Positions 43,569-48,250 are shown, counted from the stretch's first letter. The stretch: 49,797 bases of DNA from Cercozoa sp. M6MM (GCA_040357565.1 JBDODJ010000078.1), one strand, 5' to 3'. Notes: a model not told the origin generated them from the letters alone. Made by a program: numbers and translations.

Positions 43569-43756
43569 ATTCAATAAGTTTCTATCGTTTCAAACGCGGT
43601 CGAAGTGTCTTCGTTCCCGTCCGGTGCAGTACGAACGGAACATCGCATGCATGCACTGTCACGTAATGTTAACGTAAAAGCTGAACGAAAGCTATTTCAA
43701 GTTCGACGCGTCGGCTTCTTCTTGCGCTTTTTCTTCTTGCGCTCGTTCTTCGTGTC

Positions 43757-45259
43757 CTAATCACGGCCAGCTGCAGTCGCCTCAGGCTGTTTTGAAGTAA
43801 TCGCCCAGCTCAGACGACGAGAACTTCCGGCAGCAATCGAGTCAAAGGCCCAGCTATGTAAAACAGAGCATTCGAACCATGTTTGATGACGTACAGATAC
43901 TGGCTTACTTTGCGTGCAGCACAGGGATACGAGCACTAACAGCGTGCTTAACGATGACGTGATCCAAGTCAGCACCCTCGCCGACAAGCTAGAAGTAACA
44001 GGTCATTTATAGCACGCATGACTGCGAGTAAAATTTACCAACGCGTCACACTGCAAGTCGAAATCATCGAGGGTGACACCAATACTTCCGAGTTTGACTC
44101 GAAGCTCGTCCCATGGCATCCTGCTTAGATGTGACTTTGACGCACTCGGGCACAACATTAATTTATTGTCTTACGCTGGTTTTCCGATGAAGGCAAGTTT
44201 CAGCTCTGATTTCGGGCGTTCGGAAGGCTCATCTTGCTGCTTAGTAAAATACATGCGATAGTTCACTGCCATGAAACGAGTACCTCTTCATCGGCGACAA
44301 CTTCACCAACCTAGAAAATTCATTTAACACCAAGAATTCCGAGTCACATCTGATGTGTTTAGCAGATATTCAAATACATTTAGCTTGTAGACGAGAAGTG
44401 CTGGCGTGCGCCACGTCATGCTGAAGTGCCTGGCGGCGCTGGACGTGGTTTTACGCTTGCGGGTTTGAAACTTTGCGGGTTTTCGCTTGCGGGTTCGCAA
44501 CTTGTGGCTGTTGCAAGAGGTAGGCTCAAACAGCGCCCAAGCAAGAGGCTGATTGGAGATAGGCGGTTCCTTGGGAACGCGCACACAGGTCACAAAGCGG
44601 CCGTTTTCCAGTTGTTGCTCCGACCACTCGAGAGCAGCCTTTTTTTGGTCAGCCACATGCGAGATCACTGAGTGAAGCTCGTACTGCTCCACCTTATCCG
44701 AAGAAGTGCCGGAGCCTGTACGGTAACCTTCAGAGTTTACATCAACGACACGAAGTCAAGTTACCTGGAAGAGATATCACCGTCGACACAAACGACTTGC
44801 GGCTCCAGTGCTTTTTGTCCTCCGGAGCGAAGTTTGGGTCGACCAGCAGCACTTTTGGCAACGGGCGCTTGTCAACAAGCGTCGCTTGCAACAACTAAAT
44901 TTATGACACAATGATGTACAGTATACGCATATTGTTATTAAACAAAAACGTACACTTTGCACAGTGTCAGTATCCTCAAAAATCGCACCGTCTTCGCGCA
45001 GCTTCAAGAACAACAGGTCACTCTGCTTTGGCAAAAGACTTCTCACCGACTCCGAAACCAGTGCCACCGAGTGCTTCGACAGTTCCTCGATAAACGTCAA
45101 CGCATTTTGGAGCAAACTTTGGCCAAGATCCTTGGCTTTCTGCGGCAGTGCGGATTCTTCAAGAATCAACTGTAGTTTCTCCTCGTCGGAAGCACAGCCT
45201 TCCAGCATTTCATAAATCGCTTTCGGACTGCAGAGTGCGACCCGGATCGCCGGAGTCTG

Positions 45260-45297
<38 letters not shown>

Positions 45298-48250
45298 ACA
45301 CACACACTCACACGCACACACACACACACACACACATGGGTGCGGAAGGGGAGCAGAAAATACCAGCTGATACTTGCTGCCCGCTTTTGTCAACTTCTCG
45401 AAAACACCGTCCTGAAGACCCGACCACCAAAGCATATGCAGGACGGAGACACAGCTGTTGAAAAACGGTAGAACTTAAGTGGCTACGCAGTGAAAAAAAC
45501 TCACCAAGAATCCTCTAGCTCAAACGGCGCAACTTCGAAGTTTTTCGAAGTTGTTTCAATAGATGTGTCGTCCTTATCCTTACATAGATTTTTCTGAGCA
45601 CAGGAAACGTACAATAAACTAAAACTTAGCGGTCATAAAAGCAAATCGTACCCAGGCCACTTTTTGACGGCGCCAATTCTCGGATTGAAGGCTAGGTTCA
45701 GCGCTGAGGTCGTCGGCCAGCGCAAACGCAGCCTAGCCAAAAACAGGGCAAAATAGAAAAACCGGAAATGCAAAATGAGCGACAAACCCTGAGAGCAGAT
45801 GTCTGCGTCTCCCAGGCATTGTTGTGCGCCCGGACAATGCCAACAAGAAACTTGGAATCCTTGGCGTCAAAAATTCGACCAGCCGTATTGTCAAAAAACC
45901 ACTCGTCGGGCGTCTCAGGATCCTTCGCCACAGTTACAAAACAGCTATAGTAAACGCCGGCGAGTGTTTGGTAAGAAGGGAAAAACTACGAACGTAGCGT
46001 CGCTCGTCGGCTTGTTGTTCTCTTTCAACTGCGACAGCAAGTTTTTAAGACGGTCATAAACACTGTTTTTGAAGCGTTGTCTTTTAAAGCCACGAAACAC
46101 GACTACAGCACCCAAGCACACAAGCACATAACAACATAGACACAAACAAAACGAAAAAGTATAATATTGATGGAACTGAAAAACGCACAGTAGCCCGAAC
46201 TCTGAAGCAGATGTTTTGCGTTACTTTCAGGTTTGACGGACAGAATGCTGTAAACACACAGAAACAATATTGTTAAATAGAATGCAGCAAAAAACTAACA
46301 AATGACACAAAACACAGTTCATACTCACCTCTCGAACAGTTCGTGGCACAGAACGAGCGTTTCCACGGCTTCTTTGCTCAGTCTGATGGACATGCGGAAG
46401 AACAAACAACCACCTGCAAACAGCAAAACAGACTCGTTTTCTGACCGAACACAAACTAGACATCTATGGAAGAAATTAACCATGCGCCAAGGCGTTGAGA
46501 GACACCAGGACGCGCGACCCTAAACTTATAGTACAGTACAAAGCCATTGCAACTTGTGGAGCAACAGCTATCGAAAGTGCGAGTAGTACAACAGTACAGT
46601 GCAGGATGTCGTTATCATTTGAACGTCTCAGCTCTTTCCGCACCGTAATTTGCCCGTCGCAGAAGACGACTGCATTGTCATCGCCTAGGTCCCACTCATG
46701 CTCCTCCTCGGTGACATCGCCTAAAATGCAATCAGGAATAAACATGCTGTACAATACACAAGACACCAAATACAGAAATTTACCGTAGAACAAGTCGTAA
46801 CTGCGATTTTGATCATCCTCCGCTGAAAACATCATTTTGAAGATCTTTTTGCTGTCATTGGTCTTTTTGCTGTCATTGGTGCGCTCGAGTGTCACTGCAC
46901 GACCCCGAAGATTCTCACTTTTGTTGTTGTCCCACATCCACTTTGAAAAGCCACCTGCCCAGCATTAAACAACAACACTTACAGCTGCAGTATGAACTGC
47001 TTTCCACGGAGCAATCTCTTCAGTCTGAACTCACCGGGTGCACAACAGACATCTGCGAAGGAATCAACCTCCTCCAGCTCAGCTTGGTACCCTGACTGCT
47101 CGATGATCGAAGCAGCCTCATCAACTGCACATGCACTCACAATCAAGTTGTGAAGAGATTTATCTCTTAAGACTGTGGACTGCGATCTACCATAACCCTT
47201 GAACCACTCTTCGTCGCTCGGTCTGCGCTTCTCAGTACTCTGCGTGTTTTCAAGAAAAACAATTGAACTCGTCTGTCCAATCGAACAAGGAGTAGTAAGC
47301 ACCTCTAATTCCGTGTAACTCTTGTCGCCAAAGCTGCAAAACAATGCACAAAACAAACCAAAAAAATGAAGGCCAAAATACAGAGGATCAATGACCGATG
47401 CTATCACAGGGTCTCGGCGTTGTGCAGTGGCACGGTCGCGCAGCTTGTGTGAGATTTGAATGGCAGCGTCGTACACCTCCGGACAACAAACAAATAAAAG
47501 GGTGACTTGGTCCAGCTAGTGCCTCGGTCAGCGTTGTGTTACCTCCTTCGAGCGTGCTGAACGGTTGACCAGACCAAAGGCAAAAGCAGTCTCAAATGTA
47601 AATGATTGTGAAAGTTCAGACGGCGCGGACTTGTTCTTGTAGCGTTTGAAGAACTCCTTCGTCAAAAAATCCACATCGAGCTTCGGTAGTTCTGGCTCCA
47701 GTTCTGGCTCCGATTTTTCTTCATCCTGACAGGCAAAAAATATACAGCACTGGCAAAAATAAGATATGGGTACTGAGAGCTGTGCCAAAGCTGCAAATGG
47801 ATTGGACTGTTTGGGCATGCGTCGGGTGTTTCCTCAGCCGAGAGCAGAAACTGGCACACTGTCTTCCCGAGAACGCATTGCCGAATCTTCTTCTGTGGGC
47901 GCGTGCTTCGATTGGTTGTCGGGATCATCATTTTTCTCGAGTACTACTGATGATGATCGCGAAAGAGACAAAATAACTGCCGATCGCGTGACACAGAAGA
48001 CCCATCATCCATCATCCGTATCTATATCAACCACAACTTAGCACACGAAAAAGTACATGGATGGTCTATATTTGTGCAGACAGTCGTCAGCAATTTCAAA
48101 AAAGTCCGAAAACTGCTCTCGTCCAAATGTGCTGTCGATGTTTTATTGTTCTTGCCTTTTAAACAAATATACTAAAAACGACAACAGCTATCAACGACAG
48201 CTGCGCGGTTTGCTATCGCACCTCCAACACCCAACGTGCACTTGCATGTT
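43757..48250 (-). CDS. Multidomain protein: CMTR/FtsJ-like 2'-O-methyltransferase domain, PAN2-like inactive UCH/USP domain, C-terminal BRCT; start codon uncertain
   Basis: Spliced motifs EWFKGY, FADVCCAP-GGFSKWMW, RGRAVTL, FY-GDVT, VVFCDG, LNALAH-GGCLFFRM, LCHELFE-SILSVKPES, GY-FVFRGFK, HNNAWETQTSALR; then ELEDS-CCVSVLHMLWW, LPKVLLVD, YELHSVISHV, GRFVTCVRV, WALF, TWRTPALLVY; then LKLAFIGKPA-MPWDELRVKLGSIG...CDAL-LVG...IPVLHA-NWAFDSIAAG. Splice phases are compatible from 47200 to 43757. Confidence 0.75.

Follow-up and report, generated by a model that had tools for sequence, protein, structure and literature searches.

A predicted 24-exon gene of the rhizarian amoeba M6MM combining CMTR1-like, PAN2-type UCH, and BRCT-like modules

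The DNA analyzed here, referred to as the window, is the entire 49,797-nucleotide contig JBDODJ010000078.1 (assembly GCA_040357565.1; contig C78 below) of the marine amoeba Cercozoa sp. M6MM. On its minus strand, from 47818 down to 43757, it can be read as one open frame of 865 codons distributed over 24 short exons (X1 to X24), the junctions and codon phase of which were tracked exon by exon. The predicted product combines a methyltransferase part related to the human mRNA cap 2'-O-methyltransferase CMTR1, a copy of the inactive, protease-like UCH domain of the deadenylase PAN2, and a short C-terminal tail that looks like a BRCT domain. Strain M6MM is now named Lemnamoeba sinaloensis, an apofilosan rhizarian amoeba whose source was fish gills (PMC13746701). 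The published draft genome comprises 23.67 Mb in 2244 scaffolds with 52.8% GC (PMC11069148), and a chromosome-level genome now exists for the culturable M6MM organism (PMC13746701); the assembly used here has 23.6 Mb in 2235 contigs. Searches against Pfam, PDB, and homologous sequences were made exon by exon or with profiles built from exon pieces of this gene. The RNA data consisted of Logan contigs from the one public run with any sequence of the locus (run X1, a label independent of the exon numbers).

All 23 introns have GT-AG borders and lengths of 47 to 107 nt. The codon frame is continuous from 47332 down to the TAG stop at 43759-43757, with GT-AG at all junctions, and the donor sites include weak ones (GTATTT, GTAGAT, and GTACGA). 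The first-pass annotation of this stretch had placed the 5' limit of the gene at 47300; the first ATG past an in-frame stop (47836-47834) is at 47818, the putative start, which adds two or three 5' exons. That annotation had also joined about 15 exons in frame through GT-AG junctions. The junctions it named, including QKVAW|KNLCKD and LVYKLN|VGEVVADEE|QDEPSE, were recovered here, but the number of exons is 24 and the exon boundaries had been misplaced.

RNA evidence established the introns of the 5' part. A 253-nt contig of run X1 skips 47381-47334, 47302-47240, 47190-47125, and 47034-46955, and each of the four skipped segments has CT..AC ends on the plus strand; the contig therefore represents spliced minus-strand RNA and proves four 5' introns. 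Two of these four keep the frame, contain no stop codon, and had formerly been read as coding, and the first "exon" of the earlier annotation consists of four mini-exons in the contig. A second contig of the same run covers 44922-45127, within exon X17, at a depth similar to that of the 5' contig, so the UCH-like part of the gene is also represented in the run.

The gene begins with exon X1 (47774..47818; putative start MPKQSNPFAALAQLS), which is followed by a 48-nt segment that is in frame, stop-free, and presumably spliced. Exon X2 (47543..47725), placed by frame and GT-AG borders, belongs to the N-terminal CMTR1-type part and ends in FGLVNRSARSKE, at the position of the first Lys of the catalytic tetrad; by eye, this end resembles the motif NRAAMKMANMD of human CMTR1. 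X2 alone had no match in PDB or Pfam. The exons that follow were compared with two other loci of the same genome. One is a paralogue on contig C26 (37.8-38.8 kb), found with X8+X9 as the query; the other, which a genome-wide FtsJ scan detected on contig C1089 (4.2-4.6 kb), carries the region from the S-adenosylmethionine (SAM) loop through the Asp strand as a single 110-codon exon.

Exons X3 to X12 match the C26 paralogue in the same order, with E values from 8e-9 to 0.007 (local tblastn). X3 (47382..47476), the 3' boundary of which lies in the spliced RNA contig, matches C26 through VYERVRRISQTLQDRASVER (E=0.007). Both boundaries of X4 (31 nt; 47303..47333), X5 (49 nt; 47191..47239), and X6 (47035..47124) are present in the RNA contig, as is the 5' boundary of X7 (46784..46954). 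The SAM loop is split between X6, which is 54% identical to C26 (E=4e-6) and carries its first half (...FADVCCAP), and X7, which can be aligned with the FtsJ-matching C1089 exon (E=7e-6) and carries its second half (GGFSKWMW...). X8 (46598..46720) contains the strand with the tetrad Asp (VVFCDGQI) and matches both C26 (E=8e-9) and C1089 (E=0.015); its 3' boundary was taken from the position of the C26 intron. X9 (SRVLVSLNALAH; 46481..46519) aligns to SRLLVALNAVKQ of C26. The 78-nt segment between them, 46597-46520, is most likely a third hidden in-frame intron, because at the same codon C26 has a 64-nt intron that changes the frame (...LLH|W|SRLLV...). X10 (46329..46413; GGCLFFRM) is 52% identical to GRLYFRM... 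of C26 (E=4e-7), X11 (46189..46247; VKPESNAKHLLQSSGY) matches KPSSDVKHLLQSQAY (E=2e-4), and X12 (45990..46102; alternative 3' end 45994) matches C26 with E=0.007. Two in-frame options exist for the X12/X13 junction; the better-looking of them uses a TAG acceptor and gives a 49-nt intron. X13 (45788..45922; alternative 5' end 45944) and X14 (45652..45732), where the methyltransferase part ends (...QKVAW), were placed by frame and GT-AG borders.

Comparison with known structures points to CMTR1 as the nearest relative of this part. A profile (A1) made from the exon pieces X6 to X8 and the corresponding pieces of the C26 and C1089 paralogues had human CMTR1 (4N48) as its top PDB match (E=1.6e-6); the next, unrelated family followed at 0.049, and no FtsJ-type enzyme other than CMTR1 appeared in the list. 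In addition, the C1089 exon, to which X6, X7, and X8 align in order, scored 29.5 bits against the Pfam FtsJ (PF01728) cut-off of 24.1, and its best PDB match was also human CMTR1. SAM motif I, which is interrupted by the intron 47034-46955 seen in RNA, reads DVCCAP|G|GFS and aligns to FADVCAGPGGFS of 4N48. In both proteins, an (F)ADVC-x-PGGFS loop is followed by a G-x-G(V/M)TL segment, and by eye the strands and motifs (CDG, GG-hhh-K/R, and KP-x-S...Y-hh) come in the same order. A CMTR-like domain with an intact SAM loop had been proposed previously, and these results uphold the proposal. The gene differs from CMTR1 in an insertion of roughly 50 residues, present in the mRNA, that separates the first-Lys motif from the SAM loop, and in having a PAN2-like UCH domain and a BRCT-like tail downstream; G-patch, guanylyltransferase-like, and WW domains had no Pfam match on any exon in exon-by-exon scans, which are insensitive.

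The catalytic tetrad of the CMTR1-like module is degenerate as far as it can be read by eye, with residues placed according to motif order. The K-D-K-E of CMTR1 appears as S-D-R-S: Ser at the first Lys position, with a Lys one residue later (NRSARSKEVYD); Asp in VVFCDG; Arg at the second Lys position (GGCLFFRM); and Ser at the Glu position (LLQSSGY). The corresponding residues of C26 are Arg, Asp, Arg, and Gln. The earlier reading of K-D-R-S has to be abandoned, since the Lys on which it relied (RDKSLHNL) sits in the intron 47190-47125. Both loci with a readable catalytic region (C78 and C26) thus lack K-D-K-E; on C1089, the contig ends before the positions in question are reached. The only CMTR1-like loci found in the genome with profile A1 were C78, C26, and C1089, with no canonical CMTR1 among them, although the scan has low sensitivity to split genes; of the two canonical genes whose presence elsewhere in the genome had been in question, only PAN2 was located (on contig C5).

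Codon counts, summed per exon block, suggest that the methyltransferase fold has been maintained. Over 128 codons aligned with C26, 64 residues are identical, and 35 of these 64 use different codons. The nonsynonymous divergence (dN) was 0.3-0.9 in all six blocks, and the synonymous divergence (dS) was 0.85 or saturated in five of the six; in the remaining one, the 12-codon X9 block, a dS of 0.29 was close to the dN of 0.31. The C78 and C26 copies are old and, overall, appear to be under purifying selection for the fold.

The module is probably inactive as an enzyme. A fusion that is real but retains cap or RNA methyltransferase activity through a noncanonical residue set (Arg for the second Lys and the Lys one residue after the first), with the downstream parts as extra targeting domains, is unlikely. 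It would fit the intact SAM loop, the lack of a separate canonical CMTR1 among the three loci, the Lys adjoining the expected position in NRSARSKEV, and the presence of the same Arg (FFRM/YFRM) in both readable copies under purifying selection. However, all four tetrad residues are needed in the characterized RrmJ, VP39, and CMTR1 enzymes; the Glu is replaced by Ser in this gene and by Gln in C26, so that the position is neither acidic nor conserved; and a canonical CMTR1 may have escaped a genome scan that is poorly sensitive to split genes.

The middle part of the gene was compared with the genome's own PAN2, located at about 247-251.5 kb of contig C5 (G000:C5), where three UCH_1 exons score above the cut-off and RNase_T follows 1.6 kb downstream on the same strand. 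Exon X15 (45505..45593), placed by frame and GT-AG borders, holds a linker and the start of the UCH-like part (...NFEVAPFELEDS) and contains no Met; a weak match to it, NFEVAP, was seen in C26 (p=0.065). X16 (45364..45454) contains the PAN2-type "Cys box" (C)CVSVLHMLWWS, of which CVSVLHMLWWS aligns to CNALLQLLFWS of C5 PAN2 (shuffle p=0.004). X17 (44954..45256; 101 codons) is the sole long open frame in its region and is overlapped by the second RNA contig. X18 (44765..44894; …RPLPKVLLVDPN…) follows in the expected order, with LPKVLLVDPNFAPE matching LPNTLLVAANCRSE of PAN2 (E=0.018). X19 (44378..44715) includes the "His box" (YELHSVISHVAD...GRFVTCVRV), WALFEP, a basic insert at 44447-44495, and the C-terminal ARHFSMTWRTPALLVYK motif; its first half (YELHSVISHVAD...FVTCVRVPK) matches YELVSVVSHVAD...LVAHLRLPK of PAN2 (E=3e-5), and its ARHFSMTWRTPALLVYK matches AARFDMPWRQPCLVAYR (E=8e-5). 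No paralogue of X17 or X18 was found in the same genome.

The four matches to C5 PAN2, across X16, X18, and both halves of X19, are in the correct order and support the assignment of the middle module as a PAN2-type inactive UCH copy, as the first-pass annotation had suggested. They also led to the rejection of the CMTR1 guanylyltransferase-like domain as a candidate for this region. The two proteins share the spacing of the Cys box (SSCNALLQLLFWS vs SCCVSVLHMLWWS), the YEL-x-SV-x-SHVAD segment, the loss of the catalytic His pair (GQHLVAHL in PAN2 vs GRFVTCVRV here), and the closing (F)-x-M-x-WR-x-P-x-L-V-x-Y. The earlier statement that the catalytic Cys and His are missing was borne out by eye in comparisons with PAN2 and with an active USP on contig C3 (GSTCYLNSLLQ and HSGTAHAGHY): the Cys box of this gene is spaced as in PAN2, and GRFV stands where the active USP has GHY. 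The surrounding layout is not that of PAN2, which has WD40 upstream and a DEDD exonuclease downstream; here the module is preceded by a methyltransferase part and followed by a tail of about 105 residues, and the WD40, PAN3-binding linker, and DEDD exonuclease are missing. RNase_T matches were found on C5, C4, C87, C622, and C14 and not on C78. X19 further differs from PAN2 in its tandem-repeat-derived basic insert.

A lone copy of X19 was found on contig C236 (1355-1583, minus strand; QHELHSDVSHLAD..., NPLPWALFDPSE..., and ARHFSMAWRTPTLVVYR). It has intron-like borders and a 1-nt frame shift between its halves, is located immediately downstream of an unrelated gene for a multi-pass membrane protein, and lacks the basic insert RTRKRKPAKFQTRKRK. 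This copy is probably a pseudo-exon derived from partial duplication, or an assembly error.

The gene ends with the micro-exon X20 (44284..44310; 27 nt, VGEVVADEE) and the four exons of the tail, X21 to X24 (44236-44175, 44120-44039, 43988-43909, and 43853-43757, the last ending in the TAG stop), which were placed by frame and GT-AG borders. The tail reads LKLAFIGKP / A / MPWDELRVKLGSIGVTLDDFDLQCDAL / LVGEGADLDHVIVKHAVSARIPVLHA / N / WAFDSIAAGS..., and by eye its pattern LKLAFIGKP...LLVGEG...ARIPVLHA.WAFDSI resembles the usual BRCT pattern. BRCT domains serve DNA-repair and transcription proteins as modules that bind phosphopeptides. The likeness to BRCT (PF00533) lies in a length of about 85-105 residues, a hydrophobic first strand with a Gly, LLVGEG, and A-x-x-x-IPV-x-x-x-x-W-x-x-DSI. 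The tail therefore looks like a possible BRCT domain.

Frame continuity and missing start codons suggest that the three parts form a single gene. At the domain links, the exons are separated by 58, 67, and 47 nt, distances typical of the introns in this gene and thus in favor of one transcription unit. Furthermore, Met is absent from X15, X20, and X21, which leaves the UCH-like and BRCT-like parts without their own start: the earliest Met of the UCH-like part falls inside its first conserved helix, and translation from the Met of X22 would remove the first strand of the putative BRCT domain. Reading through the introns leads to a stop within 6 codons after X14 and within 17 codons after X19.

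Taken together, the data are explained best by one gene of about 24 exons that joins a CMTR1-like module, a PAN2-type UCH module, and a BRCT-like module, is non-catalytic, and was born in the M6MM lineage, a reading to which we assign about an even chance. The gene would have arisen by the joining of a diverged CMTR1 paralogue, which kept the SAM-binding loop and lost K-D-K-E (now S-D-R-S); a duplicate of the dead PAN2 UCH domain, without the WD40 and exonuclease parts of PAN2; and a short C-terminal BRCT-like domain. In the product, the methyltransferase fold might serve as a non-catalytic module binding SAM or capped RNA, the UCH-like fold as a rigid platform for protein interactions, as in PAN2, the tail as an anchor binding phosphoproteins, and the basic insert RTRKRKPAKFQTRKRK as a nuclear signal. 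A non-catalytic adaptor is favored because both enzyme-derived modules lack catalytic residues while old paralogues still share a conserved methyltransferase part, and because the UCH domain of PAN2 is a known dead fold kept as a structural part. The term "double pseudo-enzyme scaffold," used in the first-pass annotation, is a reasonable inference on these grounds. CMTR1 reaches phosphorylated RNA polymerase II via its WW domain, and by analogy one may speculate that the BRCT-like tail fills the role of that domain here. A more far-reaching version is improbable: all three CMTR1-family loci of this rhizarian lineage would have given up 2'-O-methylation, and one would have been rebuilt as a new kind of nuclear adaptor of mRNA ends, in which a dead methyltransferase that binds SAM or the cap is joined to the dead UCH platform of PAN2 and BRCT takes over from WW in recognizing repair factors or phosphorylated RNA polymerase II.

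Several observations weigh against the preferred reading of one non-catalytic fusion gene. With regard to the domain calls, no exon of the gene reaches the cut-off of any Pfam family. The only Pfam match on any exon was that of X19 to positions 264-312 of the UCH_1 profile (PF13423); with 12.9 bits and E=0.084 it is suggestive but below the cut-off of 22.2, which the diverged domain does not reach, and the domain calls therefore rest on the comparison with paralogues. None of the gene's own exons matched Pfam FtsJ, and genome-wide scans with FtsJ, UCH_1, and BRCT did not flag C78. The profile of X19 and its C236 copy matched no PAN2 structure in PDB. The tetrad was read by eye, and a 40-position profile of the second-Lys region returned no CMTR1 from PDB, so that the last two tetrad positions have no profile alignment behind them. 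The BRCT domain that the first-pass annotation had reported found no support: X21 to X24 had no Pfam match (a weak test for exons of 20-31 codons each), pairwise comparison with the three BRCT loci detected in the genome gave nonsignificant values (p=0.05-0.97, again a weak test), and no paralogue of X24 was found in the genome.

Other points concern the gene model. X13 to X15, X17, and X20 to X24 are supported by an open frame and splice signals, and further in-frame introns may be hidden in X7, X17, or X19, because three such introns had already been misread as coding. In addition, the RNA contig 44922-45127 continues unspliced for 32 nt (44922-44953) past the predicted donor of X17, which could reflect intron retention or pre-mRNA, carry-over of DNA, or a wrongly placed donor.

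The links between the modules bear on the alternative that two or three adjacent genes of the same strand were threaded into one frame by chance. No contig of run X1 spans the X14-X15 or X19-X21 link, and the RNA support that had been sought over 45650-45590 and 44380-44200 was thus absent from the contigs of the sole positive public run. The tail is linked through the 27-nt micro-exon X20, which has frame and GT-AG borders as its sole support and is the weakest link of the model, and weak donors such as those listed above make many GT-AG pairs available. The C26 paralogue is a methyltransferase part with no detectable UCH or BRCT downstream, so the fusion is seen at one locus only, and C236 carries a UCH exon alone. 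Moreover, X22 begins with Met, and a phmmer search with X19 against 1.84 billion representatives returned no self-match, which means that no protein in that set contains X19. Against chance threading, the link gaps of 47-67 nt resemble the proven introns and leave no space for promoters or untranslated regions (UTRs), the first in-frame ATG available to the UCH-like part lies no earlier than the middle of its first conserved helix, a product starting at X22 would be missing the first putative BRCT strand, read-through is stopped soon after both X14 and X19, and the RNA contigs have similar depths in the 5' part and in X17. On balance, an artifact of this kind is considered unlikely, and a single transcript is predicted.

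A decaying locus, that is, a transcribed mosaic of duplicated gene pieces yielding no useful protein, is very unlikely, for although the catalytic residues are gone from both enzyme-derived modules, several tandem repeats have been inserted into coding exons, the X19 copy on C236 is frame-shifted, and a transcript contig reads unspliced across the X17 donor, the 865 codons remain open over 24 exons, the 5' introns are correctly spliced, half of the residues are kept relative to C26 with synonymous sites near saturation, and the UCH domain of PAN2 is itself catalytically dead and yet functional.

The combination is a new domain architecture made from known families and did not turn up in a limited literature search or in the protein and metagenome searches, which were made exon-wise. 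A literature search on CMTR1, BRCT, and PAN2 together gave nothing relevant, as did single-exon phmmer searches of PDB with X2, X6, X8+X9, X13, and X19. ESM Atlas searches with X17 and X19 gave scores at the chance level (MH1 at 0.81), and neither X19 nor the C1089 exon had relatives among the metagenome contigs scanned. Searches with two neighbors of the locus, the partial gene upstream and the RGS exon, gave no matches within the length range covered. The only match of X19 among the 1.84 billion representatives, a bacterial SprB/T9SS repeat protein, was rejected as spurious on account of its repeat-wise alignment and Pfam content.

If the single-gene model is true, the locus is a natural experiment in the reuse of pseudo-enzymes, with two dead folds from enzymes acting on opposite ends of mRNA in one polypeptide. 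It raises the question of whether M6MM still makes cap1 mRNA, because no canonical CMTR1 was found, and the question of what the UCH domain of PAN2 can do apart from its nuclease. The finding concerns a single gene of one poorly sampled lineage, which limits its reach.

Several simple repeats occur in the locus, and some of them add residues to the encoded protein. Tandem Repeats Finder (TRF) detected three in coding exons: a 16-nt unit repeated 3.3 times in X19 (44447-44495), which encodes RTRKRKPAKFQTRKRK; an exact 18-nt duplication in X7 (46844-46880), which gives TNDSKK twice; and a 12-nt unit repeated twice in X2 (47688-47711), which gives EPEL twice. A (CA)37 microsatellite at 45263-45336 occupies most of the 107-nt X16/X17 intron, in keeping with the report that the M6MM genome is unusually rich in simple-sequence repeats (PMC13746701). 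At the 3' end (43700-43759), the same frame continues past the TAG stop as DTKNERKKKKRKKKPTRRT and then reaches TGA; this stretch is built on a 15-nt tandem repeat (43716-43751) and would form a strong nuclear-localization-like tail only upon read-through of the stop; otherwise, it is a repeat in the 3' UTR.

Two gene styles were seen in this one cultured organism. The contigs C5, C17, and C1089 have about 61% GC and introns rich in CCCTTA-like repeats, which translate as PLTPLTP, and the window, C26, and C236 have about 52% GC and plain introns. A mixture of two organisms in the assembly was considered as the source of the difference in GC (61% vs 52%) and rejected, as the genome derives from a culture. 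The neighboring genes of the locus include a partial gene upstream and an RGS exon of 513 codons.

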